Below are positions 1,404 through 47,269 of a stretch of 64,000 nucleotides of DNA, in pieces. The stretch lies in sequence record NC_061444.1; one strand, 5' to 3'. The notes beneath the pieces were generated by a model. The model searched no databases, had not been told where the DNA came from, and saw only the letters and a list, made by a program, of their open reading frames with translations. Made by a program: the position numbers and the translations under genes. Position 1 is the first letter of the stretch. Each line of letters opens with the position of its first letter.

Positions 1404-2390
1404 TTAAGCAGCGTCGCCGGTGCCAATAGGAAGCATCAGACGCATACCACGGTTGTCTTTACCGTTAGCGTTCATGCCCAGGTATTTGGTTTTGTTCGTT
1501 GCTTTCAGCGGGTTCAACTGAACTTCGGAGCCAGCAGAGAGAACGTCAGCAGACGTATAACCCAGCATATCTAGTGTAGCGAAGTACACATAGCGCTGAG
1601 TGTTGATCATCTGCGGGAACAGAACGATAGCACGGTTACCTTCTGCAATCATAACCTGCTGGAGCGGGTTGATGATAGGAGCAGAGTCAGGCGTCGGCTG
1701 CACAGCAGACAGTGGAACCGTAGCAGAGTAGATACCCTCTTCGATTACAGTGTAGCGCTGAATAGCGTCTGGCTTGAATGTGTCCGGATCGCCTGCCAGA
1801 CCACCGCCGCAGGAGAAGATTGCGAACAGAGGGCTTTGATCGCCAGGCTTAGTGTCAGTAGACTGAACGCCGCGCTGAACAACGAACCAGCTAAATGCAG
1901 TACCGGTGTTATCGAAACCTTCTGCGTTGATGTGCAGAGCGATGCCGTGGTCGGTAGTGATGAAGTCATACGTCAGAGGGTATGCAGACGTATCAGCAGT
2001 TGGGTCCATCTTCCAGTCGTTGGTCAGATCGATGAAGAAGTTAGTCATCAGACCAGACTTAGACATACGGCCAATTTCAACGGTGTCAGAGCGTTTTGCT
2101 GCGCGGTAGTCAGTGCTGTTTACCTGATTATCCGGCAGGACGTTTACAGCCAGAGTTTTGTCCGCGTCACTTGCAGACAGGATGATGCCCCACTTCTGAT
2201 TCTGATACAGAGGATCGACAGCATCAGAAGCAAGCAGATAGAAAGTCTTAGCAGTAGGTGTTACGGTGGTTCCTGTCTTGCCGTCAACAGCTACAAGCGA
2301 GAAGCCAGCCGTAATCATTTTGCCAACGAGATCGCGGGTCAGGTTTTCCAGACCTACGAGCTTAGTAGCATTTACACGTTGAATAGCCAT
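1404..2390 (-). CDS. Putative virion/tail-associated structural protein, paralogue of 203..1384
   Basis: 328 aa; TTDHGIALHINAEG, WFVVQR, PLFAIFS, LDMLGYTSADVLS, NRGMRLML match the neighbour. Confidence 0.65.
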   Translation of the reverse strand: MAIQRVNATKLVGLENLTRDLVGKMITAGFSLVAVDGKTGTTVTPTAKTFYLLASDAVDPLYQNQKWGIILSASDADKTLAVNVLPDNQVNSTDYRAAKRSDTVEIGRMSKSGLMTNFFIDLTNDWKMDPTADTSAYPLTYDFITTDHGIALHINAEGFDNTGTAFSWFVVQRGVQSTDTKPGDQSPLFAIFSCGGGLAGDPDTFKPDAIQRYTVIEEGIYSATVPLSAVQPTPDSAPIINPLQQVMIAEGNRAIVLFPQMINTQRYVYFATLDMLGYTSADVLSAGSEVQLNPLKATNKTKYLGMNANGKDNRGMRLMLPIGTGDAA

Positions 2391-23151: not shown

Positions 23152-24138
23152 TTAAAGTTTACGCAGACCTTTCTTAATCGCAGCATTGACTTGCGCTGCT
23201 GACGGGTCTTTCGTTGCAAACAGATCGATAACGTTCGTGATTGAGTCCAGCTCGCCAAGATGAATCTGGACGTTCTGCACTTTCTTCAAGTGGTCAGCGA
23301 TGAATGTCATCAGCCAGCCCTTCTGCTTCATGACAACAGCAACTTCAAGGTCCTTGTATGAGAACGAGAACTTATTGCCGGTAGCATGAAGCAATTTCGC
23401 AGCACCCGGAATAGGCTCGACAGCGCGGATAAACTCCGGCGCATACTGTCGGGCAGTCTTAGTGCGTAAGACAGAGTACGCTGGGTCAAACGTCCGCAGC
23501 TTGCTCTTAACTTTAGGCTTAGACCCAGGAGTACCGCCAGTCTGTTTCTGATCTGGGTTCTGCGTCCACGTCAGACCTTCATCCAGACAGTTCTGGCCGG
23601 TCATAGCTTCCTGAATGATGACACGCTTATCTTTGCCTGTCTCAACATTCTTCTCAGCTTCTGCCTCGGTCTTGAACGGACCTTTGACGATGATATCGTT
23701 GGCGTGACGAGTGTGGTCGATAACGTACCACTTGTTGCGTTCGATCTTACCGTTCGCGTCTACGGTGTTAGCGCGTACAGGACGGGTCGTTTTCGCAGGC
23801 GCGTTCTGCTGAATAGCGACAGGCTTGATCTTGATTGCACGAAGACCGTTGATCGTAGCCACCAGCGTCTTGGCTTTATACAAGTTCTTCATCGCAGTGA
23901 CAAGATTCTTGCCAGCAGCTTTCTTGGCCAATGCGGTGGTTGCATCAGCATCGTTCAGTACGTCGAGAACGGCAGACAGCTTTGCAGTGTCCAGTTCTTT
24001 GATCTTCACCAGCTCGTCGATCTTCTTAACGATAAGTTTTGCGTTCTTACCGAAGAGGATTTCAGCATTGGCGATCTGCTTCTTGTTGGCTGCGGAGACT
24101 GATACCACCGCGCCTGAAGGTAGAGTGATTTCGTGCAT
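23152..24138 (-). CDS. Basic Lys/Ala-rich protein, putative internal head protein
   Basis: 328 aa; N-terminus MHEITLPSGAVVSVSA carries the shared S-x-S-A motif. Confidence 0.5.
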   Translation of the reverse strand: MHEITLPSGAVVSVSAANKKQIANAEILFGKNAKLIVKKIDELVKIKELDTAKLSAVLDVLNDADATTALAKKAAGKNLVTAMKNLYKAKTLVATINGLRAIKIKPVAIQQNAPAKTTRPVRANTVDANGKIERNKWYVIDHTRHANDIIVKGPFKTEAEAEKNVETGKDKRVIIQEAMTGQNCLDEGLTWTQNPDQKQTGGTPGSKPKVKSKLRTFDPAYSVLRTKTARQYAPEFIRAVEPIPGAAKLLHATGNKFSFSYKDLEVAVVMKQKGWLMTFIADHLKKVQNVQIHLGELDSITNVIDLFATKDPSAAQVNAAIKKGLRKL

Positions 24139-24147
24139 TGCTGTTCC

Positions 24148-24696
24148 TTATCGTTTCTTGGTCCAGTTGTTCTGCTTCACTGGAGCGGGTGCGGGTGCGG
24201 TGTTCTCTTCGGAGATTTCGTCTTCTTCGACTTCATCTTCGTCATCCTGCTCAGGCTCAGGTTCAGCTTCTTTGACAGGAGCAGGAACAATCACTGAGGC
24301 AGCGAGAGGCGCTTGAGACACAGTATTTACAGTAGCGACAGGCTCTGCTTCTGCGGCCTTACGCGCTTCTGCTACTTCGCCTACAGCATGTGCGTGAATC
24401 ACATCCACAGTAAGCAGCGCACCCTTCTCTTTCAGGATAGCATCTGCTTTCTCTTGATCCCACTGATCCCAAATGATATCAAGAGTCTTGTAGCCGTAGT
24501 TCATGCCCTTAGGCAGCTTACCACGACCGTTGAAAGGCAGACCGTTAGAAGGAGTAGCTGGCTCGAACTCGTCCATCATCTCCCACTTACGTTTTGCCTC
24601 GATACACTTCGGACCCCAGACACCATCGCAGGCGCCGTCGTACAGACCCATCATAGTCATGATGACCTGTAGCTTCTGATAGAACTTGTTGAGCAT
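24148..24696 (-). CDS. Peptidoglycan-binding domain protein with Pro/Glu-rich tail
   Basis: LQVIMTMMGLYDGACDGVWGPKCIEAKRKW matches the PG_binding_1 pattern. Confidence 0.6.
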   Translation of the reverse strand: MLNKFYQKLQVIMTMMGLYDGACDGVWGPKCIEAKRKWEMMDEFEPATPSNGLPFNGRGKLPKGMNYGYKTLDIIWDQWDQEKADAILKEKGALLTVDVIHAHAVGEVAEARKAAEAEPVATVNTVSQAPLAASVIVPAPVKEAEPEPEQDDEDEVEEDEISEENTAPAPAPVKQNNWTKKR

Positions 24697-24707
24697 GATG
24701 GCCTCGA

Positions 24708-25160
24708 TCAGGCTGACTTTGGCAGAGGAGGAAGTGGCTTCCCGTTAACGCGATTAAAGATTCGAGATGCACCGATACCGTCAGAGTTATACTGCTTACT
24801 GGCCTGACGGAACTCCATAGGATGCTTCTCAATCCAATCGAGAACGTTCTGCATCTGAGCAGCGGTAATGACTTTCGCCTGCACACGCTTCTGTAAGTAC
24901 AAGCGAATGCCGTGACCTGTAGCACCGCTGGTGCTTTCGACAGAGCTAACACTGCGAATAACGCTGGTAGCAGCTTTGGCTGGAGACAGACCTTTAGCAA
25001 TCAGGTCTTTCAGCTTCTTAGGGTCGGAGTTCAGAAGTTTGATGCAGTCGTTGTACTGCGTCTGGGTGATCTTACCTGCTTTCTTACGCGCAGCAAGTTC
25101 GTTCCATAAAGAGGAACGCCCAACAACTGCGGCACTTAAACTGATAGTGATTTTAGCCAT
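24708..25160 (-). CDS. Basic protein, putative internal head protein
   Basis: 150 aa; N-terminus MAKITISLSA; two similar helical repeats (ITQTQYNDCIKLL / ITAAQMQNVLDWI). Confidence 0.5.
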   Translation of the reverse strand: MAKITISLSAAVVGRSSLWNELAARKKAGKITQTQYNDCIKLLNSDPKKLKDLIAKGLSPAKAATSVIRSVSSVESTSGATGHGIRLYLQKRVQAKVITAAQMQNVLDWIEKHPMEFRQASKQYNSDGIGASRIFNRVNGKPLPPLPKSA

Positions 25161-25181: not shown

Positions 25182-25199
25182 AAGGGGCCGAAGCCCCTT
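25182..25199 (-). terminator. GC hairpin, possible weak terminator
   Basis: AAGGGGC-TTCG-GCCCCTT after SNF2 stop; poor U-tract. Confidence 0.45.
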
Positions 25200-25204
25200 A
25201 CCTT

Positions 25205-28200
25205 TTAGACTGATTTGTTTTTCGACGCGGTCAGTTTCAACTTGTCGATACCCTGAATCGCTTTCTTGATGTTCGTGATGGTGTAGCCAGCTTTCGCAAT
25301 CTTGTTGATTCGAGCTTTCGCACCAGCAGCGTTTTTCACGAAGCCGATCCACATACCCGGTGACAGGTCGAACGTACCGAACTTACGAGTGTTAGGCACT
25401 TTCGTTCCGACGAAGCGTTTCATCTGCGGGTTAGTTTTCAGGTCAAACATAATACGCAGACGATCTTCCATCACCATTGGATATGCCTTGACGTGTTTCT
25501 TGTCAGTGGCAGTCTTATGACGCACGAGGAAGAACTGCTGCAACTGAGACTGCAACTTAACGGCCAGTTTGTAGTTGAAGCCCATGCGAGCGTGTGTCTC
25601 GTCGAAGCTATCCTGAATGAACTCCAGACGCTTCTCGGACATGCGGTCGAATGACAGTCGTTTCCCTTCGATGAAGTCGAGCATTGCAACGAAGTCATCA
25701 TAGTACGCACAGTCGTAGTAGACGTAATCACCGAACTCGGTGAAGTCGAAACTTTTCAGAGCTTTCGCATCAGGGTCAGTCGCGTCAGCATACAGAGCAA
25801 CGAATCCGTTGTACACTGTAGGCGTCAGCTCCAGCGCCATATCAGCGCCGCCCATATCGTCTACCGCAGTGATGGCACCAGGCTTAGCACGACGAGTAGT
25901 GTTGTCCAACACTTTCAGTTCAGACGGCTTACGGCGACGAACTTTCTTGGCAGCTTCCTCAACACCTTCGTTGATTGGCTTACCTTCTTCCTTGTTCGCA
26001 ACACGCTTGGCAACACGAGCAGCTTTACGCGCTTGTGCTTCCACCTTCTTCTCTGTCTCTTTCGTGTCGGCAGTCTGCGTTTCGTCGAGAACGGTGTCTT
26101 CAACTTCAACACGGTTCGCTTCGGCATTAGCACGTTTGCGGTCTTTCTCATTCGCCCACGGCTTACGCTGTTCGAAGAAACGTTTCAGGTCGTTCTTGTC
26201 TACCTTAGTAGCGATGTGAACTTTCGTCGCAGGAATCGCAACAGTCTCACCAGTACCAGCCAGACGAACACGAACGGTGCTGATAGGGCTATCGCCGCGC
26301 AGCTTACCATCAACCATACGAACAGTCACAGACACAACAACACCGTTACCGAACTCAGTCACGACAGGTGCACGATTCAGAGAATCTTTCAGCCCTTCGC
26401 CGCTAGTGAAGTTACGGTTACGTGCCCAGTCCAGAATACGCTCAGTGCCCCAGCCATTACGATCAGGGATCTTCTGGTTGGCAACGAGAGGCGTCTGCTC
26501 CATAACACGGAAGTCAGTCAGAGCTGGAGTAGCTGGCAGCGCTTGCATTGCTGCAATCGTTGTCTTACGCATCTCTTGGAACTCTTGTGACTCGATTTCG
26601 TTCAGGTCACGCTTCGCATAGAAGTATTCCCGGAAGTCATCCATCGTGTTGTTATCGATCAGCAGCTTCGCGCTCATTTTGATCGGGTCCAGTTTGTACT
26701 GGTCGAGTGCTTCGTAGCGCTGGTTGCCTTTCTCGTCGAAGCGAGTCTTCTCCAGAGTCTTCCACATCAGACGTGCAACCTTACCAACTTCTAAGGTCTT
26801 GTTCGTCATAACCCAGTCGATGAACACAACTTCACGAGCCATGTCGCCCGGCTTACCGTTCTCATCCAGCTTCGCAGCAGCAACGTCAGGACGGAAGATA
26901 CGCGCAGTAGACTGATCGTAAGTACCAGGTGACCACGGAGTATCGCAGCGGATGATACGGCTACCCATCTGCATGTTGTGGCCTTCGGAGATTGCCTGTT
27001 CGTTCGCAATCAGAATCTGAACGTTGTTGTCAGTTTTGAATGCGTCGAGGTTAGCGTCTTTGTTCTGGCCGAGCTTACCAACTTCACCGTGATACACCAC
27101 AGCAACTTTCTTGTAGTTAGCTGGCAGTGCATTGTAGATGGCGTTAGCAGCACGAACGTAACGCGTAAAGACAATCAGTTTACCCTGCACTTCCGGTTTC
27201 CAGTAGTCTGGATCATCCGGCGGCGGAGTCATTGAAGGAGGCAGCACTTGACGCTTGAACTCTTCGGACTGCTTACGTGCCAAATACTTCTGACCGTTAT
27301 AGACAGCAATGTCCAGTTCACGCGGCTCTACGCCCGGCTTCCATTCGAAGATCTGTTGCTCACCCACCATCGGGTCACGCTCAGGCTGCACTTCAAAGTG
27401 CTTCTTGATACGGTCGATAATGGTCAGTACCTTGGCAGAGGTGAAGTGCGTAACGCCCGCAGCTTCAAACGTCATACGTGCAACGTCATCACCCATTGGG
27501 TCGGTCAGCATCATCTCCATACGCTGGAAGTACATGTTCAGGTCAGCGTTACCTGCAAGCAGTGCGCCCAGGTCATCGCCTTCTTCAATCTCGTCTTCGT
27601 CGATATCAGAAGCGCTATCGCTATCACCGCCACCAGCTTCGTCGTCATCGTCGTCGCTACTGCCACCAGATTTACGCTTCGCAGCCTTAGCAGCTTCGTC
27701 CAACTTCTCCAACACTTCTGCGTACATTGCGTTGTACACTTCTTGGTGCAGAGCAGAGTTAGGAACTGACGGGTCATCGATCTCAACCTGAATGAAGGTG
27801 TCAATCGGGTTCGGCAGCATGAACGCCCAGTGCTTACGCTTGAACGAGATGAACGCTGTATGGTTTGCCATACGTGAGTGCGCACGACGAATCATTTCGA
27901 TATCGTCTTTCGCGCCGTCATACGCAACATCCAGTGAGTCACCGAACATCGCAGGCGTCATCAGTGCAGCCTGACCAACGATATCACGCACACGGTCAGT
28001 CACCAGCGTACCGGTAGCGATACGTGCATAGCGAACAGACGGAGCAGTGAAGACCGCTTTGGTGTTGAAGTGAACCTGAGAACCAGATTGACCACCAGAG
28101 AAGTTCTTAACTTTGTGCGATTCATCGAGCAGCACGTAGCTGAACTTGAAGCGGTTAACGAACTCTACAGCACCACGCACACGAACACGCACACCGCCGA

Positions 28201-31057
28201 TATCAACGTTGAACGTACCAGTTTGCAGATAGCTCAGGCCGACGATGAAGATTGTGTTACGAGGTGACTGAGAGATCACATCGTACATACGTTCTTCGCC
28301 CCACGTGTTCACAGTGTCAGCAGTGATAGGCACTGCGTTCCAACCGTTAACGATTTTGTGGAGGTCGTCACACCAGTTCGCTACGAGGTTAGACGGACAG
28401 ATGATCAGAGGACGAATGTTCTCTTCACCTAAATCGTCAAGCTCTTTGATAGTCGCAGCGATATCAGTCAGACCGATAATCGTCTTACCACCACCAGGCG
28501 CGATAAAGATTGTTGCAAAGCGCGGACGACGACGCAGTGTTTTGTGCGCTTCGACCTGATGCGGCAGTAACGCTGCACCATCTTTCAGACCCGGAATACG
28601 GATATCATCAATCGTGATACCGCTATCAGGTTTCAGGCGTTCGATCTCAGCCTCAGCGGATTCGAAAATCTCAAGAGCTTTAGGAATCACGTCGCTGTAC
28701 ATCGTGGCGAACGGCAGAATGATTTGTTGCAGACGGCCAGAGCCGGGCGCTTGTTCGCTTTCAATCAGAGAGCTAAACAGTTTCTTACGATCAGCACGTA
28801 CCAGAGACTGTGCCATTTCACGATACAGCGCACCACCGAAGTAGTTGTTGAGTCGTGCCATGTCAGACAGTTTGGACTTCTCACCCATCACGAAGTAGTG
28901 AGTGTGTGACGGCAGAGATTCGGTTGCAGCCTGAATGCTCCCCATCTCGCTCATGCTGGTGGCAATCAGGTTAGAGCCACGCAGACCAGCAGCATCGTTC
29001 AGCACACGAATCATGATGCGAAGCATGGTCAGTGCAGGACGTTCGTTTGCCAGATCAGGTACAGAGAAGTCGTTAGCGATCAGATTCTCGTACAGGTCTT
29101 TGTCCATCGGGCTTTCAGACAGGGACGCGTTTTCTGCATCCATACCGATTGCTTTACGCGCGTTCTCCACCAGCGTTTTCAGGTCAGGAACTTGTTTGTT
29201 CTTGAGCATGAACTCGTAGGTCTGACACGTCTGCGCAATGATGTTCAACAGCTCAGGCAGATTAGAACCTTCGGTGGAGTTGAACTTGATTGTGGATTCA
29301 CTCACACTCTCAACCAACTTGCCACTGCCGGATTCAACCTTAGCAGCTTCGATCATCGTGTCATACGATGGACGATACAACGCCATACCGCCAGATGCCT
29401 GATTGTGATAGATGTTGCCAATCACGTTCGTGGCTGAGCGGAAGTTCGGTGCTTCACCAGGCTCTGCGAAGTCGTAGCCTAAAGCATCAGCAACGTCCAG
29501 AGAGTTCGGCGCTTTCATACCGACAGTACGCGTTTCGTTAACTGCCAGCCCACCGCCGTTCGAGGTGTTTACGATCAGCGAGAAGTCAGGGTCGATACCG
29601 ATACACACGTCACTGAAACGAGTCAGAGACTTAGCTTTCGCCTGAATGTCACGGTCGAAGTCCAGATTCTTGTTCTGGATAGCGAACATGTTAGTACGCA
29701 GCGTGTCGTGTTCGGTAGACAGTGGAATACCTTTCTCGAACAGGTCTTCAAGCACACCGTTCAAGGAGGTTTCGTACTGCTTGACCATTTCGAGGTCAAT
29801 GTCTTCACGACGAGGCAGCACAGCCATTGTACCGTTCGGCATGATAGTCATACCGTTCTCGTCTGCGACCACATCATTCACGGCGTAACCGAACTTCTCA
29901 CGCAGCTTCTTCAATTCAGGCAGAGAAGTAGCAGACGTTACATAGCGCGGGATACGTGCAGCACGAGTGATACCAGTACGAGTAGAACCAGCAACACGGA
30001 AGTAGTAGCTTGCCCAGCCCTGGAACCAACGATACAGACACATGGTCTGAGTGTCAGCACCCTGAGAGATGTACTCAACCATCTCTTTCTCGAAGTTAAC
30101 GATCAGGCCACCTTCAACGCGAACGTCGGTAGCGAGTGCCACTTCGTTAAAATCGACAGGAGTGTCAGGACTGATCTTCATCGCCTGAATCTTACGATCA
30201 ATCATGGCCTTGCCGGGGATTGAACGAATACCGATAGTCATGAAGTCACCCAGACCATCGACTACAGGCTTCTCCAGATTGCGGAACAGGTCGATATCAA
30301 TGTTGTGCATTGAAGGGTGAATAGAACGCAGAGCAGCGTTATACACAGACCAGTCTTTGTCGAGAGGGATGCGCACCATCTTGGTGTCGAACGCATTACC
30401 GTTAGTACGGTCAACGCCGAAGATATCTTTGTAGATAGTCTTCGCAACACGAATTGCCTGTTGAGCAATGTCAGCGCTGTACGTGCGCAGGTTAGCGCTT
30501 TCGAAGTTCGCATCGTTATCAACACGAGGACGGTCGCTACCCTGATTGTTCAGAACGTTGAAGTTACCGTTCGAAGCCAGCGGGCTAGTCGGGCACGGAG
30601 TACCTGACATGATGATATCTTTACCGCCAGGGAAGCGCGTACTGTTTTCGATGATAGCACCAGAGGAAGAAGACAGGTGCTCGGCGAGAGCAGTCTTAAT
30701 CTCACGGCTCAGCTTATCACCGTTAAGCAGCATATTGATTTTCAGCGTAGACGCGTCGATGTTATTCTTAACGCGCTTCTGGAAATCTTCAGGTGCTACT
30801 TCCAGCATGTCTTCGAACTCTGCACCGTTCACAACGATGTAGTTAATCAGGTCGAAAGCCGCATAGATACGTGCCACGGTTGATGCGGTAAACACTGCGA
30901 GGGCTTCGTAGTTACGACGAGACTTCCCTGTAGCGTACATCTTCGATGTTTTCGCATCAAACTCGGGCGGCAACGGACGAATAGCAAGCGCCTGATTAAA
31001 CGTATCGGCGATTTGCTGAGTCGCTGTTGCTGACACACTAATCATCTGATTCATCAT
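25205..31057 (-). CDS. Giant SNF2/SWI2-family helicase/ATPase
   Basis: 1950 aa; PHQVEA, APGGGKT, LIICPSNLVANW, DESHKVKN, ATGT, EGHNMQ, DTPWSP, QSTARIFR; ~800-aa unknown N-terminal region starting MMNQMISVSA. Confidence 0.85.
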   Translation of the reverse strand: MMNQMISVSATATQQIADTFNQALAIRPLPPEFDAKTSKMYATGKSRRNYEALAVFTASTVARIYAAFDLINYIVVNGAEFEDMLEVAPEDFQKRVKNNIDASTLKINMLLNGDKLSREIKTALAEHLSSSSGAIIENSTRFPGGKDIIMSGTPCPTSPLASNGNFNVLNNQGSDRPRVDNDANFESANLRTYSADIAQQAIRVAKTIYKDIFGVDRTNGNAFDTKMVRIPLDKDWSVYNAALRSIHPSMHNIDIDLFRNLEKPVVDGLGDFMTIGIRSIPGKAMIDRKIQAMKISPDTPVDFNEVALATDVRVEGGLIVNFEKEMVEYISQGADTQTMCLYRWFQGWASYYFRVAGSTRTGITRAARIPRYVTSATSLPELKKLREKFGYAVNDVVADENGMTIMPNGTMAVLPRREDIDLEMVKQYETSLNGVLEDLFEKGIPLSTEHDTLRTNMFAIQNKNLDFDRDIQAKAKSLTRFSDVCIGIDPDFSLIVNTSNGGGLAVNETRTVGMKAPNSLDVADALGYDFAEPGEAPNFRSATNVIGNIYHNQASGGMALYRPSYDTMIEAAKVESGSGKLVESVSESTIKFNSTEGSNLPELLNIIAQTCQTYEFMLKNKQVPDLKTLVENARKAIGMDAENASLSESPMDKDLYENLIANDFSVPDLANERPALTMLRIMIRVLNDAAGLRGSNLIATSMSEMGSIQAATESLPSHTHYFVMGEKSKLSDMARLNNYFGGALYREMAQSLVRADRKKLFSSLIESEQAPGSGRLQQIILPFATMYSDVIPKALEIFESAEAEIERLKPDSGITIDDIRIPGLKDGAALLPHQVEAHKTLRRRPRFATIFIAPGGGKTIIGLTDIAATIKELDDLGEENIRPLIICPSNLVANWCDDLHKIVNGWNAVPITADTVNTWGEERMYDVISQSPRNTIFIVGLSYLQTGTFNVDIGGVRVRVRGAVEFVNRFKFSYVLLDESHKVKNFSGGQSGSQVHFNTKAVFTAPSVRYARIATGTLVTDRVRDIVGQAALMTPAMFGDSLDVAYDGAKDDIEMIRRAHSRMANHTAFISFKRKHWAFMLPNPIDTFIQVEIDDPSVPNSALHQEVYNAMYAEVLEKLDEAAKAAKRKSGGSSDDDDDEAGGGDSDSASDIDEDEIEEGDDLGALLAGNADLNMYFQRMEMMLTDPMGDDVARMTFEAAGVTHFTSAKVLTIIDRIKKHFEVQPERDPMVGEQQIFEWKPGVEPRELDIAVYNGQKYLARKQSEEFKRQVLPPSMTPPPDDPDYWKPEVQGKLIVFTRYVRAANAIYNALPANYKKVAVVYHGEVGKLGQNKDANLDAFKTDNNVQILIANEQAISEGHNMQMGSRIIRCDTPWSPGTYDQSTARIFRPDVAAAKLDENGKPGDMAREVVFIDWVMTNKTLEVGKVARLMWKTLEKTRFDEKGNQRYEALDQYKLDPIKMSAKLLIDNNTMDDFREYFYAKRDLNEIESQEFQEMRKTTIAAMQALPATPALTDFRVMEQTPLVANQKIPDRNGWGTERILDWARNRNFTSGEGLKDSLNRAPVVTEFGNGVVVSVTVRMVDGKLRGDSPISTVRVRLAGTGETVAIPATKVHIATKVDKNDLKRFFEQRKPWANEKDRKRANAEANRVEVEDTVLDETQTADTKETEKKVEAQARKAARVAKRVANKEEGKPINEGVEEAAKKVRRRKPSELKVLDNTTRRAKPGAITAVDDMGGADMALELTPTVYNGFVALYADATDPDAKALKSFDFTEFGDYVYYDCAYYDDFVAMLDFIEGKRLSFDRMSEKRLEFIQDSFDETHARMGFNYKLAVKLQSQLQQFFLVRHKTATDKKHVKAYPMVMEDRLRIMFDLKTNPQMKRFVGTKVPNTRKFGTFDLSPGMWIGFVKNAAGAKARINKIAKAGYTITNIKKAIQGIDKLKLTASKNKSV

Positions 31058-31548
31058 TCACCCAGTTTGGTATAGTTGTCGATTACTGATTGCCACACGC
31101 TTGGAACAGGCAAGCGACGATCAGCAGCAAGATCAGACAGCACTACTGCCAGAGCGTAGGCTCGAAGAGGGTTCAACCCTTCAAACTTATCGCGCGTAAA
31201 CACAGACATGAGTTGATCGTTTGTCAGTGTCTGATATTGCAGGCGATACTCGGACAGATAAGCGCGGTACTTGCCGTCATCAACTGGCGTTGTATCAGGT
31301 ACGCTCTGAATGGACAGCAATGCTTTCGCAAGGGCATCCATAATCAAGAGCAGATCAGCCTGATCAAACGGAGTGATATCCGGCACGTTAGAACGGCCCA
31401 ACAGTTCGAGAACTGATTGAGGCAGTTGAATAGGCTCTCGCGCCTCAGAGATAGACTTCATGATTTCTCCAGCCGCATTTGCGTAGCGCTTATCGCTAGT
31501 CGCAATACCGGACAGCAGAGTATGAAGCCGCGAGTTTACGTCAATCAC
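31054..31548 (-). CDS. Hypothetical protein
   Basis: Start moved to GTG 31548 (AGGAGA RBS, removes the 218-nt overlap with the upstream gene); 164 aa. Confidence 0.6.
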   Translation of the reverse strand: MIDVNSRLHTLLSGIATSDKRYANAAGEIMKSISEAREPIQLPQSVLELLGRSNVPDITPFDQADLLLIMDALAKALLSIQSVPDTTPVDDGKYRAYLSEYRLQYQTLTNDQLMSVFTRDKFEGLNPLRAYALAVVLSDLAADRRLPVPSVWQSVIDNYTKLGE

Positions 31549-31558
31549 GGTTCTTCTC

Positions 31559-32341
31559 CTAAATAAAAATGCTCTTGACCAAAGAGTTGAGCTTCTTCTC
31601 CACAGCATGACGTTTGTACGAGGACAAGAAACAACACAGTCTGCGTGATTGAAGGTGCAGTGCGATTGCATTACCCTTAACACGCATACAGTCCACACCC
31701 TGTTCCATACTCCAAGGATGCCAAGACCGAGGCGACAGCATTGCTTGTTGAATTGAAGGATAAGTGTCCGGCACAACAGGCAGGGGAGACTTTGCCAGTT
31801 TCTTCGTCAAATTATCAGTTTTGAACAAAGCCTTTGGTTCTTTGTTCGAAAACCAGTAAGGAACCTGCTTATGCAGCAGCTCACCAATCTTGGGTATGCC
31901 GCCACGAGTCGTCTGTGGTACATACACCAGATAGATATCGATCGTGGTGTTGATGCAGTTAGCAACTCGGTTGTAGTCGCTATCAGTTCGACTATGTACT
32001 TCCGCCAGACGAAACTTGTTGCTGAACTCAATACGTTGCAGCCACTGTTTCAGGTCACGCTGTTGAAGCTGGAGCAAGGTCTTAGCCTGCTCGATAGAAT
32101 GCTTCGTGATAGGCGGAACAGGACGCAGCAGAAACTGAGTGCTGGTCTTTGCGAGAGAAGACAGGAAGCCTTCTACCACGCGTTGCATACCTAGAGGCTG
32201 CGGCAGTGAGTGAAACAGATCAATCGCAGTCTGCGTAGAGATGAATGCTCCCCACGCTTCGATATACTCAGGGCTGACGCAATCAGGAAAGTTGCGTAAG
32301 TCCAACCCAACGTCTGAGCCATATTTTTTCAAACGACTCAC
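31559..32341 (-). CDS. Hypothetical protein
   Basis: 260 aa, GTGA overlap with HNH stop. Confidence 0.65.
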   Translation of the reverse strand: MSRLKKYGSDVGLDLRNFPDCVSPEYIEAWGAFISTQTAIDLFHSLPQPLGMQRVVEGFLSSLAKTSTQFLLRPVPPITKHSIEQAKTLLQLQQRDLKQWLQRIEFSNKFRLAEVHSRTDSDYNRVANCINTTIDIYLVYVPQTTRGGIPKIGELLHKQVPYWFSNKEPKALFKTDNLTKKLAKSPLPVVPDTYPSIQQAMLSPRSWHPWSMEQGVDCMRVKGNAIALHLQSRRLCCFLSSYKRHAVEKKLNSLVKSIFI

Positions 32342-32703
32342 CGTCTACCTCCATGAAGCAGTCTTGAGCCACGGCGGTTGTCACTACCTATCTGGTTGTT
32401 GTCACAGTTGTAGCACAGCAGTTCAAGGTTGTGCTTCATGTTCGAACCGCCCTTGGCATGTCCAACTTTGTGGTTAAGAATAAGCTGGGCAGTCGGTACG
32501 CCACAGCGTTCACAGAACTGACCGCGCTCGTCAATGATACTCATTTTAAGACGAGTCCAATCTGTTCTATCCATTCGAACGTGAGTGCCTACGCGAGCAC
32601 GTTCAAAACCAGTAACACCTGCAAGACGTTGAGAGGTAGACATGCTACGACCGCGCCCACCCATCTGTCTTGCAGCAATACCACCCTTAGGTCTGTATGC
32701 CAT
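32338..32703 (-). CDS. HNH endonuclease
   Basis: CERCG...LNHKVGHAKGGSNMKHNLELLCYNCDN with two CxxC pairs. Confidence 0.85.
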   Translation of the reverse strand: MAYRPKGGIAARQMGGRGRSMSTSQRLAGVTGFERARVGTHVRMDRTDWTRLKMSIIDERGQFCERCGVPTAQLILNHKVGHAKGGSNMKHNLELLCYNCDNNQIGSDNRRGSRLLHGGRR

Positions 32704-32725: not shown

Positions 32726-32734
32726 TATTTACAG
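32726..32734 (-). promoter_or_regulatory. Putative phage promoter motif A (CTGTAAATA)
   Basis: Exact motif 23 nt upstream of HNH start. Confidence 0.5.
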
Positions 32735-33588: not shown

Positions 33589-33616
33589 AAAAAGGGAACC
33601 CCGCGAGGCTCCCTTT
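33589..33616 (-). terminator. Rho-independent terminator
   Basis: GGGAGCC-loop-GGTTCCC-TTTTT. Confidence 0.75.
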
Positions 33617-33625
33617 AGGGTTTGA

Positions 33626-34432
33626 TTAGAAGCTATGACCTTTGATGATCGATGCAATCTTACCGTAGTATTCCGGGCTGTAGCGGAACACTTTAGCGTA
33701 GTAGTCCAGCAGCTTCGGTACGTCAACGCCAGCAGCAGCAGACACGCTATCGATCTCAGGGAACTGGCGCTCGTCCAGCTCGTTACCGGACAGCACAGCT
33801 ACCATGCTCATGGAGCTAATCTGTTCTTCATTACCCTGCTCGTCAACAACGAGGAAGGTGTTGTCGTCAGTTACGTTCGCAGCAACGAAGCCAACTTTCA
33901 GAACACCGCTGTTAGACACGAAGCTAACCATGTCACCGCCAACAGCGCCGGCCAGAATCAGATCGTTACGCGCAATCGCCTGTGCCAGAGTAGGCATAGA
34001 GGTTGACAGAGAAACAGCAGAAGCACCAGACACGGAACGAATCATATCGATCAGTTCAACGTTGTCGTTCGCGCTGCTCTCACGTACCAGTACGTCTTCA
34101 CCGCTTTCGCTGCGACGAATCGCCCACATGCGTTCTGACTTGTCCATGTACATGTTCTTGGACAGCGCCTGGAACTCGTCACCCATCTGAGACACAGGGA
34201 TAACGTCCTGCATACGATTCAGAATGGTGCGGACGAAGCTGGTGGTTTTACCCTGCTCGATCATGGATGACGCACCTTCAACAGGCATGTATTCACGATT
34301 GCAGGAAGCGCTTACGATAGCGCCGAAGTTGTCAGCGATGTTTTCACCGACGTTGTGAGTCACTTGCACGATAGCCACGCTCTGGGAGTCGTTGAGCGCG
34401 TCAATCTGTTTGATGAAAGCCTTCATTGTCAT
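33626..34432 (-). CDS. Hypothetical, probably head-associated structural protein
   Basis: 268 aa; AGGAGA RBS; preceded by motif B; internal SAVSLS and IDSVSA resemble the shared S-x-S motif. Confidence 0.5.
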   Translation of the reverse strand: MTMKAFIKQIDALNDSQSVAIVQVTHNVGENIADNFGAIVSASCNREYMPVEGASSMIEQGKTTSFVRTILNRMQDVIPVSQMGDEFQALSKNMYMDKSERMWAIRRSESGEDVLVRESSANDNVELIDMIRSVSGASAVSLSTSMPTLAQAIARNDLILAGAVGGDMVSFVSNSGVLKVGFVAANVTDDNTFLVVDEQGNEEQISSMSMVAVLSGNELDERQFPEIDSVSAAAGVDVPKLLDYYAKVFRYSPEYYGKIASIIKGHSF

Positions 34433-34453
34433 CTCCTGAATGTTTCGACAATT

Positions 34454-34461
34454 GAAATTAG
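34454..34461 (-). promoter_or_regulatory. Putative phage promoter motif B (CTAATTT)
   Basis: CTAATTTC, 22 nt upstream of start 34432. Confidence 0.5.
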
Positions 34462-43893: not shown

Positions 43894-44403
43894 TTACTCC
43901 TTAATCATCTTGACGCGCGTATGATCAAATATACCAAAGGTAGGAACATCATGGTGCTCACCCTCATTACCTTTGATAGAATCATAGCCCGCCAGTTTTA
44001 GGATTTTACTGATCTCTGTATACTCGTCCCACCACATGTACACTCGCTTGTGTTGATTAGCAGGTATGTGTTTGTTCAGAGCATCCAGACGACCGACTAG
44101 TGTTATCGCTTCATCTTTGCCAACCAGATGCAACTGAAAGGCTTCCATGATTAGCTGTTTCACTCGTCTATAAATCTCAGCGAACCGTACTTCCGTCCAC
44201 AGAGAACGGAATTTCAGGCTGGCATAGCGACCTGGGTCCGCATGAAACTTGTAGAGGCGCCCACCTTCCGCATACTTCTCAGCATACGCACGATCTGGTG
44301 TTACCCAAGTCATGTGTTGCTTCTTAGCATGTTCATCTGACCAGTCTTCTGCAAGACCGCGATAGTAGATTGTAGGCGCACTTAGGCTGACGAAGATCTG
44401 CAA
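43894..44403 (-). CDS. ADP-ribosyltransferase-fold (ART-PolyVal-like) protein with shared N-terminal peptide
   Basis: TTG start, MQIFVSLSA; YYRG, WVTPDRAYAEKYA, GRLY, GYDSI, FGIFD..RVK. Confidence 0.5.
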   Translation of the reverse strand: MQIFVSLSAPTIYYRGLAEDWSDEHAKKQHMTWVTPDRAYAEKYAEGGRLYKFHADPGRYASLKFRSLWTEVRFAEIYRRVKQLIMEAFQLHLVGKDEAITLVGRLDALNKHIPANQHKRVYMWWDEYTEISKILKLAGYDSIKGNEGEHHDVPTFGIFDHTRVKMIKE

Positions 44404-45315
44404 TTACTTGCCCAGACGTTTGAACGTAACACCCTTCTCACCCTGAGTGAACTTAATAACGCCAGGGACTTCAAAGCCATTTGCCGTTTTCTGCACTGGG
44501 ATATTTTTATCCTCAAGGTGCATACGCAGCTCAGTCATAACAATGTTGTTCTTGCCTATGGCCTTGCCTTTGAGATCTTTGGTATCGTATTTAACAGAAC
44601 CTGATTTCTTGTTCTGATCAAAATTGATACCTACAGTTTTAAGCATCTTCGGCAGAGACTTATTGACTTTTGCAGCCAGTGTAGCCGGGTTCATTTCCAC
44701 TGGTTTCTTCGCAGCGCGCTTTTTAGCAGATGGAGCTTTCGCGTCTGCTTTGGCCTTGCGAGTTGCAGGCGTGCTGGCTTTGCCTGCGGTCAACTTTTCG
44801 GCCTTCATGAATACAGGCTTGAATGTACCGCGCTTGCCAGTAATACCGAACTCAGTCAGCTTGATACCGCGAACAGTTTTCAGAGCCTTGGCCAGACCCG
44901 GACCTGACATTACGATATCAGATGCAGACAGCGGAAGGTTCAGTCCACCGAAACCGTGTTTCTTCGCGTGGGCATTCGCTTCTTTGATCAGCTTCTTAGC
45001 CTGCTTGATATCCGCAGACGATTTAGCTTTCTCGGTCTTATAGGTTTCGCGCAACGCAGTCTTACGCGGGCCTTTAGGAGTTTGTTGTGCTTTGGTAAAA
45101 GCGGTCGCAGCTTTGATACGTGAAGACATACCAGACACAGCGGCAGTTTTCGCTTTCTTCAACAGACCGACAACAGCCTGCAATTCAGCTTTTCGCTCAG
45201 ACACAACTACGAGCGTAGTTTTGCCGCCGACTTTAGCTACCTTATAGCTTACTACCTTAACACGAGCAGACTCAGATACTAAAGAATCTGCAATATTGAT
45301 TCTAATAAGAGCCAT
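44404..45315 (-). CDS. Lys/Ala-rich basic protein, putative internal head protein
   Basis: MALIRINIADSLVSESA leader; N-terminal half paralogous to 45353..46318. Confidence 0.55.
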   Translation of the reverse strand: MALIRINIADSLVSESARVKVVSYKVAKVGGKTTLVVVSERKAELQAVVGLLKKAKTAAVSGMSSRIKAATAFTKAQQTPKGPRKTALRETYKTEKAKSSADIKQAKKLIKEANAHAKKHGFGGLNLPLSASDIVMSGPGLAKALKTVRGIKLTEFGITGKRGTFKPVFMKAEKLTAGKASTPATRKAKADAKAPSAKKRAAKKPVEMNPATLAAKVNKSLPKMLKTVGINFDQNKKSGSVKYDTKDLKGKAIGKNNIVMTELRMHLEDKNIPVQKTANGFEVPGVIKFTQGEKGVTFKRLGK

Positions 45316-45352
45316 TTGTTTTATTCCTTAACCGCCACGCAGATGCAGCGAT

Positions 45353-46318
45353 TTACCAGTTAGTGTCTGTGATGTTGGACTCACCCAAAGCGCGTTTGAA
45401 AGAATCAGGAGTTAAACCGAATCTAGCCATATCGGATTTCTTAACCACCAGCTTCTGGCCCTTCTTATTGGTGAATACACCTTTACCTTTTTCGACAGTA
45501 CCGGTCCAGCCAGCAGCAGAAGTGATAGCTTTACCGCCATTCAACTCTTTCAGCATACGCTTGGACATGCGGGTGTCTTTATCCCACTGACGGGACTGCG
45601 CCTGCAACGACTGACGAGCAGCATCACGAAGCTGACCCTCAGTTTTATACTGTTCGCCTTTCGGTCCGCTTGATTTGTCATAGTGACGCCACAAGCTATT
45701 CTCGTTCTTAGGCTTAGGCTTAGCTTTCGCATTAGGTGCAGTACCCGGCTTCAATTTCTTCGCAGCAGGAGAAGCACCAATCTTATCGAACTTCTCACCA
45801 GTCGCGTATCGCGGCTTGAGTAGAGAAGGTGCACGATGCGTACCGCTCGCTTTTACCCAGAAGCTATTCGTTTTAGCTTTACCGATTTTACCAATAGTAT
45901 AATCAGGCTGGGTAGATGTGATGTACGTAGGACGCACTGTGGGATCTAAGACCTTCAAGCCTGCTTTAGCTAAGGAGGACAGTGCATCTTTAGCCAGCTT
46001 TTTGGCCGCAGCAACGTCCTTCTTGATCGTAGCATTGTTTGCTTTGATCTTGTCACGTAGCGGCCCTTTCTTACCTGCATCACGCGTAGACTTCAACTTG
46101 AGTTTAAGTTTCTCGGTGGCTTGGCTAAGTTTAGCCGCAGACAGACCAAGCTTCTTCGCGGAAGCGAGAGAAGTGGCGGCCTTTGTGACAACAGGCTTGT
46201 GCTTCGAATCAATAACGATCATAGGACCGCTAGAAGATTGTACGATGTGGTACGCAGGTTTCTTTGCAGCAGATTCGGACAACAACGTGTCCGCGATATT
46301 AATACGAATGAGTGCCAT
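45353..46318 (-). CDS. Lys/Ala-rich basic protein, putative internal head protein
   Basis: Start moved to ATG 46318 (AGGGA RBS), giving MALIRINIADTLLSESA. Confidence 0.55.
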   Translation of the reverse strand: MALIRINIADTLLSESAAKKPAYHIVQSSSGPMIVIDSKHKPVVTKAATSLASAKKLGLSAAKLSQATEKLKLKLKSTRDAGKKGPLRDKIKANNATIKKDVAAAKKLAKDALSSLAKAGLKVLDPTVRPTYITSTQPDYTIGKIGKAKTNSFWVKASGTHRAPSLLKPRYATGEKFDKIGASPAAKKLKPGTAPNAKAKPKPKNENSLWRHYDKSSGPKGEQYKTEGQLRDAARQSLQAQSRQWDKDTRMSKRMLKELNGGKAITSAAGWTGTVEKGKGVFTNKKGQKLVVKKSDMARFGLTPDSFKRALGESNITDTNW

Positions 46319-46328
46319 TCTATTTCCC

Positions 46329-46934
46329 TTAGACCAGGGCTCTGCCTGGGAGATCGAAGTTTTTACCGGCTGAGTAATCACCCAGCGCTTGGTACAGGGA
46401 GTTGCGTAGCATCTGCTCAATGATATCTGAGTTGTGTGCCGAAGCGTCTTTGAAAGAGACCTCGATCGACTCAGTTCTCGGATTCACAACTGCATACCGC
46501 AGAGGACAGATAGCCTGTGCTTCACACCACGCATCGACTTTAATCTGCAAGTCAGGTGTTAATGGAATGCGGAAATCACTTAGCTGAAACACAACGCTTT
46601 GAATTGGTGGAGGGGAGGACTGAGACAGGAACTTACCGTTCACATTCAATCGCTCCATAGCGTTTGCGGCTTCATAGATCGTCTGATAGCCGTCACCGAT
46701 TGTAGTGAGGCTATTGAGCTTGAAGCTATGCGTTGTCAATCCTTTACGAATCAACTTGGCGATATTAAGCTCATAATCACCAGAGTCATCTCGCATAAAA
46801 GTGACGAACGCGTAGAAGGCGAAACCATCTTCTTCGCGTAAAAGTTTGTGATCTAATACACGAAAGCCCACGACACTTTGCAGTGCCTGGGCTGTGATTT
46901 GCGTCGCCTTAGATAGGGAGACGTAGATTTCCAT
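46329..46934 (-). CDS. Hypothetical protein with shared N-terminal peptide
   Basis: 201 aa, MEIYVSLSK. Confidence 0.6.
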   Translation of the reverse strand: MEIYVSLSKATQITAQALQSVVGFRVLDHKLLREEDGFAFYAFVTFMRDDSGDYELNIAKLIRKGLTTHSFKLNSLTTIGDGYQTIYEAANAMERLNVNGKFLSQSSPPPIQSVVFQLSDFRIPLTPDLQIKVDAWCEAQAICPLRYAVVNPRTESIEVSFKDASAHNSDIIEQMLRNSLYQALGDYSAGKNFDLPGRALV

Positions 46935-47269
46935 TAACGCAGACGGGCGAGAGCTTTCTTAGCAGCAGCCAGAGTAGGTTGGATATCGCCTTCGTCGTCG
47001 AACTCACCTTCGAAACGAATGTCGAGACCAGTCACGTTGAAACCTTCGTCTTCATCTTTGGTGATGATGCCGAAACGAGCGGTGTCGCCGGTAGCGCTGA
47101 TGAAACGCAGATCCAGAATGTCGTTCGGACCTTCGAGGTCAGACGGCATACCATCGTCGATGATCTCGAACAGAGCTTTCTTGTCCAGACCCTTGAAGAA
47201 GGCGTTCAGTGCAGGAGATGCAGACTCGGATTTAACAGCGTCGTTCAGGTTCAGTTTGATAAGAGACAT
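46934..47269 (-). CDS. Small acidic protein with shared N-terminal peptide
   Basis: 111 aa, MSLIKLNLNDAVKSESA. Confidence 0.6.
   Translation of the reverse strand: MSLIKLNLNDAVKSESASPALNAFFKGLDKKALFEIIDDGMPSDLEGPNDILDLRFISATGDTARFGIITKDEDEGFNVTGLDIRFEGEFDDEGDIQPTLAAAKKALARLR

Follow-up and report, generated by a model that had tools for sequence, protein, structure and literature searches.

Gene gp179 of Erwinia phage pEa_SNUABM_32, a jumbo phage, encodes a protein of 1950 residues annotated as "DNA helicase", and raises the question of where such a giant motor acts: inside the infected cell in which it is made, or, after loading into the phage head, in the next host cell. The gene (NC_061444.1, positions 149205–155057; 100% match) lies in a stretch of 64,000 nucleotides (hereafter, the window), for which a preliminary description had proposed a virion-delivered DNA translocase with a short N-terminal leader. 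The features of the locus are collected in Table 1.

Table 1. Features of the gp179 protein and its operon, with positions numbered in the window.
Feature	Position	Strand	Basis
gp179 (YP_010300956.1), 1950-aa SNF2-family ATPase	25205..31057 (including stop codon)	minus	ORF list and translation
Disordered N-terminal leader, residues 1–13	31019..31057	minus	AlphaFold pLDDT below 50
Tag core I-S-V-S-A, residues 6–10	31028..31042	minus	conservation in homologues
Family-specific, mostly helical N-terminal region without known fold, residues 14–800	28658..31018	minus	model and searches
SNF2 ATPase lobe 1, residues ~820–1100	27758..28600	minus	Pfam SNF2-rel_dom; invariant columns
Acidic Asp/Glu-rich insert between lobes, residues ~1128–1162	27572..27676	minus	sequence; variable block in orthologue alignment
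SNF2 ATPase lobe 2 (motifs IV–VI), residues ~1290–1480	26618..27190	minus	Pfam Helicase_C; relative 1z63
Likely small Tudor/KOW/SH3-like β-barrel, residues ~1538–1621	26195..26446	minus	VIA-align; weak Foldseek
Lys/Arg-rich long helices, then disordered linker, residues ~1636–1740	25838..26152	minus	sequence; model secondary structure, low pLDDT
Conserved C-terminal α/β domain, residues 1741–1950	25208..25837	minus	conserved in all orthologues
GC-rich hairpin with UUCG loop, just past gp179 stop	25182..25199	minus	sequence; no T-run
gp178, 150 aa, tag I-S-L-S-A at residues 6–10 (25131–25145)	24708..25160	minus	
gp177, 182 aa, untagged; orthologues annotated as putative lysozyme	24148..24696	minus	
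gp176, 328 aa, V-S-V-S-A at residues 12–16 (24091–24105)	23152..24138	minus	
gp180, upstream in operon; 4-nt overlap with SNF2 start	31054–31548	minus	
gp181, upstream in operon	31559–32341	minus	
gp182, HNH endonuclease, upstream in operon	32338–32703	minus	
CTGTAAATA motif (M1), 31 nt upstream of HNH start	32726..32734	minus	motif comparison
Strong terminator-like hairpin (11 pairs and T-run), after gp184	33591..33616	minus	

The gene is a single open reading frame with a complete set of SNF2 motifs in its centre, as the preliminary description had stated. The protein aligns over its full length with phrog_21391, a phage "DNA helicase" family of ~2000 residues (2811 bits; residues 4–1948 on profile positions 42–2021). 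The ATPase core (residues ~820–1480) is divergent yet complete; the Pfam models SNF2-rel_dom and Helicase_C match residues 854–987 (29.5 bits; cut-off, 24.9) and 1291–1389 (31.9 bits; cut-off, 23.5), respectively. Walker A (Gly855–Thr859, GxGKT), motif II (DESH, residues 978–981; DExH type), motif III (TGT, residues 1015–1017), and Gln1382, Arg1386, and Arg1389 of motif VI are all invariant in 20 homologues. By Pfam scores and catalytic motifs alike, gp179 belongs to the SWI2/SNF2 family of SF2 ATPases, and in NCBIfam and PADLOC it gave generic helicase-C matches only, far under the cut-offs. The best solved sequence relative of lobe 2 is an SsoRad54-like SNF2 core (PDB ID: 1z63; E 9e-6), with a match that spans only ~100 residues and leaves the flanking 1300 residues of gp179 without a counterpart; this relationship supports a mechanism of double-stranded-DNA translocation. 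We predict gp179 to be a giant SNF2-type double-stranded-DNA translocase, a reading that would correct the bare annotation.

The N-terminus of gp179 (MMNQMISVSA) carries a tag that recurs in gp178 and gp176, in agreement with the preliminary description; the orthologues of gp176 retain S-x-S-A behind a longer leader (MSLIKL...). Within the first 16 residues, S[VLI]SA was counted in 10 genes, of which nine are real and one is an artefact of taking the longest ORF; with 0.37 expected, this count gives p ~1e-11. The relaxed pattern [IVLFM]S[VLITE]S[AK], searched over the same 16 residues, was counted in 16 genes of pEa_SNUABM_32, including two artefacts of gene starts, against 0.31 expected (p = 3e-22), and about 14–17 genes are tagged overall. 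Enrichment was also found in two other genera, represented by Yoloswag (8 against 0.19 expected) and JA29 (7 against 0.57 expected). Ser7 of gp179 is invariant and Ser9 at least 90% conserved among 20 homologues down to 40% identity, and orthologues in other genera retain S-x-S-[A/K]. The Ser, Val, and Leu codons of the tag vary between copies, so that selection acts at the peptide level, and a DNA-level motif (promoter, ribosome-binding site, or downstream box) is ruled out. The tag is also modular, because the Nudix orthologues of PaBG begin at residue 16 of the pEa_SNUABM_32 protein, that is, without it. The gp179 leader, which is predicted to be disordered, is thus an N-terminal tag that is conserved, modular, and robust in its statistics, and ~15 other phage proteins share it. 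Nuclear import, as in nucleus-forming phages, was dropped as its function, since the gene set is of the PaBG/Lu11 type (DnaB, UvsX, topoisomerase II, sigma factor, and a capsid protein of 366 residues) with no phage RNA polymerase annotated.

Among the tagged proteins are an Alt/Mod-like ADP-ribosyltransferase (ART; phrog_832), a Nudix hydrolase, and KMPT-N-domain proteins, in two of which (gp135 and gp151) the KMPT-N domain directly follows the leader. The resemblance of this set, the Alt-like ART and KMPT-N in particular, to known injected proteins counts for packaging. In three genera, gp143 is the protein with the strongest enrichment of internal S-x-S-[A/K/G] sites (p = 5e-8, 1e-7, and 9e-10), and its gene occupies the scaffold position between the capsid and protease genes; this enrichment suggests that S-x-S-[A/K/G] is a candidate cleavage site of the head protease. 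In the propeptide region of the capsid protein, L-S-E-S-T is retained at about residue 33 and S-x-S at about residues 66–76, and the second site agrees with the capsid protein of PaBG losing ~20% of its mass. The scaffold-position protein of PaBG showed no enrichment of S-x-S-[A/K/G] sites, and the gp145 protease gave no sequence match in Pfam or the PDB.

Direct evidence from virions comes from PaBG. Band 1 of CsCl-purified PaBG virions, the largest Coomassie-visible band, was reported as a "RuvB helicase-like protein" of 221,161.95 Da, listed without comment on its role (PMC7412058, Table 1). Only one PaBG ORF fits this mass, namely the gp179 orthologue gp202 (YP_008433524.1; 1969 residues), with a computed mass of 221,159 Da, within 3 Da of the reported value. 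PaBG gp202 is similar in size to gp179, aligns over its full length (30% identity over 85% of the query), and begins with ...NSLSAA, placing S-L-S-A at residues 9–12. The neighbourhood is the same in the two phages (head–tail connector ... HNH ... two small genes ... SNF2 ... lysozyme-like gene ... PolA), whereas no set of other PaBG proteins clearly shares the tag; in the Lu11/HRDY3 branch, the N-terminus of the SNF2 orthologue differs. We used gp202 alone, as the other 13 virion bands of PaBG are ambiguous by molecular weight, or missing in the case of small proteins. Crude-lysate mass spectrometry of the Agrican357-type Erwinia jumbo phages lists no helicase, and was set aside because the lysates were unpurified and the phages are not close relatives. 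The direct virion support for gp179 is one gel band of an orthologue with 30% identity, and helicase bound to DNA might be carried along with the particles during purification.

With the PaBG orthologue as the sole direct link between tag and packaging, the leader might instead be another kind of N-terminal signal: a processing or degradation tag that times enzyme activity, or a docking strand for a chaperone or membrane site. The tagged Nudix hydrolase and ART could serve the phage within the infected cell as well, and the SNF2 gene carries a promoter motif of the replication class. We nevertheless regard such a role as quite improbable, considering that the motif is concentrated in gp143 and present in the propeptide region of the capsid protein, that the credible tagged genes, with one exception, share the strand block of the structural genes, and that N-terminal leaders for head loading have direct precedents in T4 and P1. 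The leader has no hydrophobic core, lipobox, or Cys, which rules out a Sec or lipoprotein signal.

The promoter motif bears on the question from the other side. The gp179 operon is headed by CTGTAAATA, which also precedes the ligase, PolA, clamp-loader, SSB, and sigma-factor genes, and not by the motif found upstream of the head and tail genes; in Lu11, the CTGTAAATA motif is annotated as a putative middle/late promoter. CTGTAAATA and TAATTTCA represent putative promoter classes of the genome. The SNF2 operon is probably insulated by the hairpin after gp184 against the late-type promoter nearest to it, at 34452–34461. Since it has no T-run, the hairpin just past the gp179 stop may be only a weak terminator or RNA end-stabiliser; hairpins of this UUCG type also close other operons of the genome. 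In four public RNA-labelled runs (X1–X4), contigs of 47–87 kb extend across the region at flat depth, a pattern that resembles phage DNA carry-over or blanket coverage and is uninformative on timing and transcript ends. The lysozyme-like gene (gp177) adjoins the SNF2 gene in all relatives, as does PolA in every one (PaBG, Lu11, NCTB, HRDY3, Y3, Yoloswag, and JA29), but conserved position carries little information because these genomes are collinear throughout.

The replication-gene motif makes a role of gp179 inside the infected cell also likely. The virion-delivered translocase of the preliminary description accordingly stands in part: the PaBG orthologue in CsCl-purified virions and the conserved tag speak for it, and the promoter motif, together with the terminator between the operon and the late-type promoter, speaks against delivery as the only role. 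The stronger alternative is that gp179 is a purely intracellular motor for replication, recombination, or repair, remodelling forks or branches together with PolA, the clamp, and ligase, and that its detection in PaBG virions is adventitious, owing, for instance, to protein adhering to packaged or co-purifying DNA. The company of the operon among genes headed by CTGTAAATA, the retained adjacency of PolA, the helicase annotation, and the proposal that jumbo-phage SNF2 proteins substitute for UvsW (PMC7824862) all fit such a motor. PaBG, however, encodes a separate UvsW, and the top Coomassie-visible band in purified virions implies many copies per particle; in addition, a purely intracellular motor leaves the conserved tag, common to the ART and the Nudix hydrolase, without explanation. 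We therefore judge it rather unlikely.

It is probable, in our view, that gp179, once synthesized in the infected cell, is packaged in the phage head and reaches the next host along with the genome. In this course of events, the leader (10–13 residues, hydrophobic-S-x-S-[A/K]) would most likely target gp179 to the core of the assembling prohead, by analogy with T4 and P1 DarB, and the head-maturation protease would probably cut it off at S-x-S-[A/K/G]. The processed protein would then be ejected together with the genome into the next host cell. As the final step, we favour an action on the incoming genome, which gp179 may clear of or shield from host DNA-binding or restriction proteins, or may help to pull into the cell.

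The ~800 N-terminal residues were described at the outset as unknown sequence, and neither they nor residues 1480–1950 match any Pfam family even at E ≤ 10. AlphaFold gave a well-folded model of the first 800 residues (mean pLDDT, 81 outside the leader; pTM, 0.70), for which two aligners found no usable match in the PDB (Foldseek best E, 0.24; VIA-align best Z, 4.2), although this model comprises several domains, and a small known fold inside it could escape a fold search. A protein atlas fold search with residues 14–800 and 1500–1950 also gave no usable match, and in BFVD residues 14–800 matched only the probable orthologues of NCTB and Lu11 (TM 0.75 and 0.71, respectively) and, weakly, the Motura helicase. 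The acidic linker and the Lys-rich C-terminal region noted previously are directly readable in the sequence. For the conserved C-terminal domain (residues 1741–1950), the sole matches, all of them weak, were to the XPB N-terminal domain, ACT-like folds, and ribosomal proteins (VIA-align Z, 4.1–4.9).

The small barrel is comparable to SAWADEE, Spt5 KOW, and Tudor domains (VIA-align Z, 4.0–4.9; root-mean-squared deviation, 1.2–2.6 Å over 45–67 residues), with weak Foldseek matches to CarD/CdnL and the RNA polymerase (RNAP)-interacting domain of Mfd; it is likely of the Tudor/KOW/SH3-like fold class. Such similarities, which extend to a NusG KOW domain, suggest another use of injected gp179, namely as a RapA- or Mfd-like remodeller whose barrel binds host RNAP and redirects it, together with the injected ART, to the phage early genes. 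It would suit a phage that has a sigma factor but no RNAP of its own, and one in which the Alt-like ART bears the same leader. The structural matches are, however, all weak (Z below 5; Foldseek E, 0.2–0.9), small barrels are a very common fold, and no RapA or Mfd family model in NCBIfam or PADLOC matches gp179; we hold this use to be very doubtful. Action on the incoming genome remains the step that we favour.

To our knowledge, few phage systems have head-loaded proteins that are injected, mainly the internal proteins and Alt of T4 and the Dar proteins of P1. The comparison with DarB made in the preliminary description holds for overall layout and packaging. DarB is a head-packaged anti-restriction protein of 2255 residues, present at ~40 copies per virion, with an N-terminal packaging signal in which residues 6–10 are critical (PMC9024508); like gp179, it is a giant with an SNF2-type core (DarB residues ~830–1520) between long N- and C-terminal regions. 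The comparison does not extend to the methylase or to sequence outside the SF2 core: DarB has an N6-adenine methylase domain, which the same search recognizes by the N6_Mtase and Eco57I models, whereas gp179 gave no methylase family match in Pfam even at E ≤ 10, and no homology to DarB was found outside the SF2 motifs (BLASTP best E, 1.2; hhalign probability, 1.7%, limited to motifs II–III). Moreover, the Dar proteins have no common leader consensus, unlike the tagged proteins of pEa_SNUABM_32.

In this last respect, the closer counterpart is the capsid-targeting sequence of T4, carried by internal proteins IPI–III, with the ADP-ribosyltransferase Alt also being packaged (PMC9026906). In both phages, a short N-terminal leader is common to several unrelated proteins, and an ART is among the packaged proteins of T4 as it is among the tagged proteins of pEa_SNUABM_32. 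The prohead protease of T4 cuts the leader off at L/I-x-E, a motif also present in scaffold and capsid, while in pEa_SNUABM_32 the motif is hydrophobic-S-x-S-[A/K] and its cleavage is predicted; the candidate cargo is also more numerous than that of T4, and includes a 217-kDa motor. The consensus leader marks ~15 candidate cargo proteins in several jumbo-phage genera infecting plant pathogens, the largest of which, the SNF2 motor, is already supported by the proteomics of a relative. Confirmation would yield a list of the proteins that enter the cell as infection begins, a cleavage motif that can be tested for an unclassified head protease, and a packaged SNF2 motor that lacks a methylase and whose function, be it genome entry, shielding, or the clearing of host proteins, is open to genetics.

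Activities like those of the tagged set are combined in the polyvalent proteins (Iyer et al. 2017, PMC5512222), which occur in phages and conjugative elements, contain SNF2 ATPase, ART, and KMPT-N/metallopeptidase-associated domains, and have been proposed to accompany the DNA into the host. In the polyvalent proteins these activities are fused in one polypeptide, whereas in pEa_SNUABM_32 they reside in separate proteins, each with the same leader. It is quite possible, and we propose tentatively, that in the PaBG/AD1/Alexandra lineage of jumbo phages one protease-removed leader loads these separate enzymes (the SNF2 motor, ART, Nudix hydrolase, and KMPT-N proteins) for injection. If so, the leader would offer a ready-made tag for packaging foreign proteins in a very large head, and the tagged set would correspond, in distributed form, to the fused polyvalent proteins.

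The window is identical (100%) to the record of Erwinia phage pEa_SNUABM_32 (NC_061444.1; 265,891 bp; genus Alexandravirus), the record position minus 124,000 giving the window position, and gp179 is encoded there in a single uninterrupted frame of 1950 codons. RefSeq labels the product "DNA helicase" and GenBank labels it "hypothetical protein"; PHROG 21391 matches it from end to end (2811 bits in a profile search). Its only Pfam matches are SNF2-rel_dom (residues 854–987) and Helicase_C (1291–1389), each above cut-off, and across 20 homologues no substitution is seen in Walker A, DESH, motif III, or the arginines of motif VI, which confirms the single 1950-aa SNF2 frame of the preliminary description. 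Among solved structures, the one closest in sequence is the SsoRad54-like SNF2 core (PDB entry, 1z63; ~100 residues aligned). Searches of NCBIfam and PADLOC returned just generic helicase-C matches, far under every cut-off; together with the Pfam core, this places gp179, as judged from its sequence, outside the named subfamilies, as a divergent ATPase of SNF2 type.

Features of the gp179 region and related genes (window positions unless stated otherwise)
Feature	Position	Strand	Description
gp179	25205–31057	minus	1950-codon frame (translation)
gp178	24708–25160		ISLSA at residues 6–10
gp176	23152–24138		VSVSA at residues 12–16
gp184	33626–34426	minus	266 aa; late-type motif upstream, strong terminator-like hairpin downstream
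Promoter-like motifs	32726–32734 and 34452–34461		two classes, CTGTAAATA and TAATTT[C/T/A]A (sequence)
gp196	43894–44403	minus	annotated start at an internal ATG (139 aa)
gp197–gp200	44404–47269	minus	cluster; longer leader (gp197, gp198, gp200) or short leader (gp199)
gp143	108591–110612 of NC_061444.1, outside the window		annotated "ATPase"; acidic repeats, 10 S-x-S-[A/K/G] sites
gp179 barrel	residues ~1538–1621		Tudor/KOW/SH3-like small barrel (model; Z 4–4.9, rmsd 1.2–2.6 Å, 45–67 residues)
gp179 α/β domain	residues 1741–1950		conserved; no clear relative in searches (model)

For the regions flanking the SNF2 core (residues 1–800 and 1480–1950), Pfam returned no family, even at E ≤ 10. Residues 1–800 were modelled with AlphaFold on 20 homologues; the model was confident (pLDDT 81; pTM 0.70), with residues 1–13 disordered. 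Against the PDB, neither Foldseek (best E, 0.24) nor an independent structure aligner (best Z, 4.2) gave a convincing relative, and among predicted viral structures the model matched only probable orthologues of gp179 (TM 0.75 and 0.71) and, weakly, the Motura helicase, suggesting that the fold is specific to its own family; a small known fold may be contained in this multi-domain model. The model of residues 1451–1950 was moderate (pLDDT 68) and predicts a small barrel, with weak CarD/Mfd-type structural matches, followed by long Lys-rich helices, a disordered linker, and the α/β domain. Both the ~800 N-terminal residues without a known family and the Lys-rich C-terminal region described earlier are borne out.

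The N-terminus of gp179 (MMNQMISVSA) carries a short leader with the core ISVSA at residues 6–10. Throughout the genome, S[VLI]SA occurs within the first 16 residues of 9 real genes (10 scored, one being an artefact of the longest-ORF start) against 0.37 expected, and only six internal copies exist in 86,000 residues. The relaxed pattern [IVLFM]S[VLITE]S[AK] is found in 16 genes where 0.31 would be expected (p = 3e-22), although two of these genes are artefacts of assigned gene starts. The leader proposed for gp179, gp178, and gp176 is therefore real and far above chance. Two types are distinguished, a short one, MEIxVSLS[A/K] (Nudix protein gp122, ADP-ribosyltransferase gp211, gp196, gp199, gp212, gp178, gp179, gp135, and gp151), and a longer one, M[A/S]LI[K/R][I/L]N...SESA (gp197, gp198, gp200, gp255, and the gp176 family). 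From copy to copy, the conserved residues are encoded by different codons, so that selection acts at the peptide level. Among 20 homologues of gp179, down to 40% identity, Ser7 is invariant and Ser9 is at least 90% conserved; S-x-S-[A/K] is kept in the orthologues of Y3, Yoloswag, JA29, Afa-NA1, NCTB, and PaBG, and the N-terminus differs in the Lu11/HRDY3 branch. The leader is similarly enriched in Yoloswag (8 against 0.19 expected) and JA29 (7 against 0.57), and is modular: the Nudix orthologues in PaBG lack it, starting at the position of residue 16 in the pEa_SNUABM_32 protein.

The leader-bearing set includes, besides the Nudix hydrolase, an ADP-ribosyltransferase with a match to the PHROG named "RNA polymerase ADP-ribosylase", and gp151 and gp135, in which a KMPT-N domain immediately follows the leader; gp144, adjoining the protease gene, has two such domains. 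In gp196, a TTG start 30 codons upstream of the annotated ATG gives (M)QIFVSLSAP, a perfect leader copy; the annotation has probably placed the start too far downstream, making the product too short. No Pfam or PHROG match was found for gp197, gp198, gp199, or gp200.

The proteome has roughly one internal S-x-S-[A/K/G] site for every 700 residues, and 10 are present in the 678 residues of gp143, whose gene occupies the usual scaffold position between the capsid and head-protease genes. In each of the three genera tested, no protein is more enriched than this one (p = 5e-8, 1e-7, and 9e-10), which resembles a scaffold or core protein cut at several sites rather than an ATPase. In two of them (those of pEa_SNUABM_32 and Yoloswag), gp184, a candidate processed head-internal protein, comes second. 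The capsid protein retains L-S-E-S-T at about residue 33 and S-x-S at about residues 66–76, the latter site being consistent with a reported loss of ~20% of its mass by the capsid protein of PaBG. S-x-S-[A/K/G] is thus likely to be the head-protease motif, and its pattern in leaders, gp143, and capsid protein mirrors that of T4, in which the capsid-targeting leader ends in a protease motif that also cuts scaffold and capsid proteins (PMC9026906). Pfam and PDB sequence searches assigned no family to the protease, gp145.

Band 1 of CsCl-purified PaBG virions was reported as the 221,161.95-Da product gp202, named "RuvB helicase-like protein" (PMC7412058). The PaBG orthologue of gp179 (1969 aa; 30% identity over 85% of the query by tblastn; same gene neighbourhood) has a computed mass of 221,159 Da and is the sole PaBG ORF fitting this band, and is therefore an abundant virion component. 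Our literature search found no virion proteome for pEa_SNUABM_32 or its genus; the Agrican357 data are from crude lysates of phages not closely related to it. The virion delivery proposed earlier is thus supported in part, by the leader and the PaBG orthologue, and is somewhat favoured as the best explanation; the task proposed for the motor after ejection is inferred.

The main rival, a purely intracellular replication or recombination motor, draws on expression signals. Two upstream motifs recur in the genome. One, CTGTAAATA, stands before the genes for ligase, PolA, the clamp loader, SSB, and the sigma factor, as well as before the HNH gene at the head of the HNH-gp181-gp180-SNF2 operon; the other, TAATTT[C/T/A]A, lies ahead of head and tail genes and of gp151 and gp212, which carry the tag. 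A strong terminator-like hairpin 3' of gp184 probably insulates the SNF2 operon from the closest promoter of the late type, and expression of gp179 together with the replication genes seems likely. Such expression fits an additional role in the infected cell and is compatible with later packaging; with the orthologue in purified virions, we regard the purely intracellular motor as rather unlikely and retain virion delivery. In public RNA-labelled runs the region is present only as 47–87 kb contigs at flat depth, so these are uninformative on timing; the four libraries, labelled metatranscriptomic RNA-Seq, hold near-identical contigs of this phage (5 differences in 5.9 kb), and either one of them may share its origin with the sequenced genome or the libraries may contain phage DNA.

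Among orthologues elsewhere, that of Yersinia phage fHe-Yen9-02 (2458 aa) is ~500 residues longer and has a LAGLIDADG_3 domain, suggesting an intein or homing-endonuclease insertion. In Dickeya phages, the helicase is reported as two separate ORFs in JA11 and JA33 and as one ORF in JA13 and JA29 (PMC6143709), so that the protein may withstand being split or may not be needed under laboratory conditions. A 266-kb contig with the label Salmonella enterica serovar Infantis carries an 81%-identical orthologue, and such a contig is cited as a near-complete phage of the group (PMC7412058). In the 78-kb record of Alcaligenes phage Afa-NA1 (PV550095.1), the genes around a full-length orthologue (55% identity) encode head-to-tail joining, HNH, and tail sheath proteins; the record seems to represent a jumbo-phage genome that is partial or rearranged.

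In P1 DarB, the precedent invoked earlier, the first 30 residues suffice for packaging and residues 6–10 are critical (PMC9024508). DarB scores on SNF2-rel_dom and shares the overall layout of gp179, but has an N6-methylase domain that gp179 lacks, and neither BLASTP (E 1.2) nor profile comparison (probability 1.7%) detected specific homology. The comparison therefore holds for architecture, and probably for packaging, and gp179 is not to be classed in the DarB family. The activities of the leader-bearing set also overlap with those of polyvalent proteins, proposed to enter cells along with phage or plasmid DNA (PMC5512222); unlike these, the pEa_SNUABM_32 set consists of separate proteins with a leader in common.
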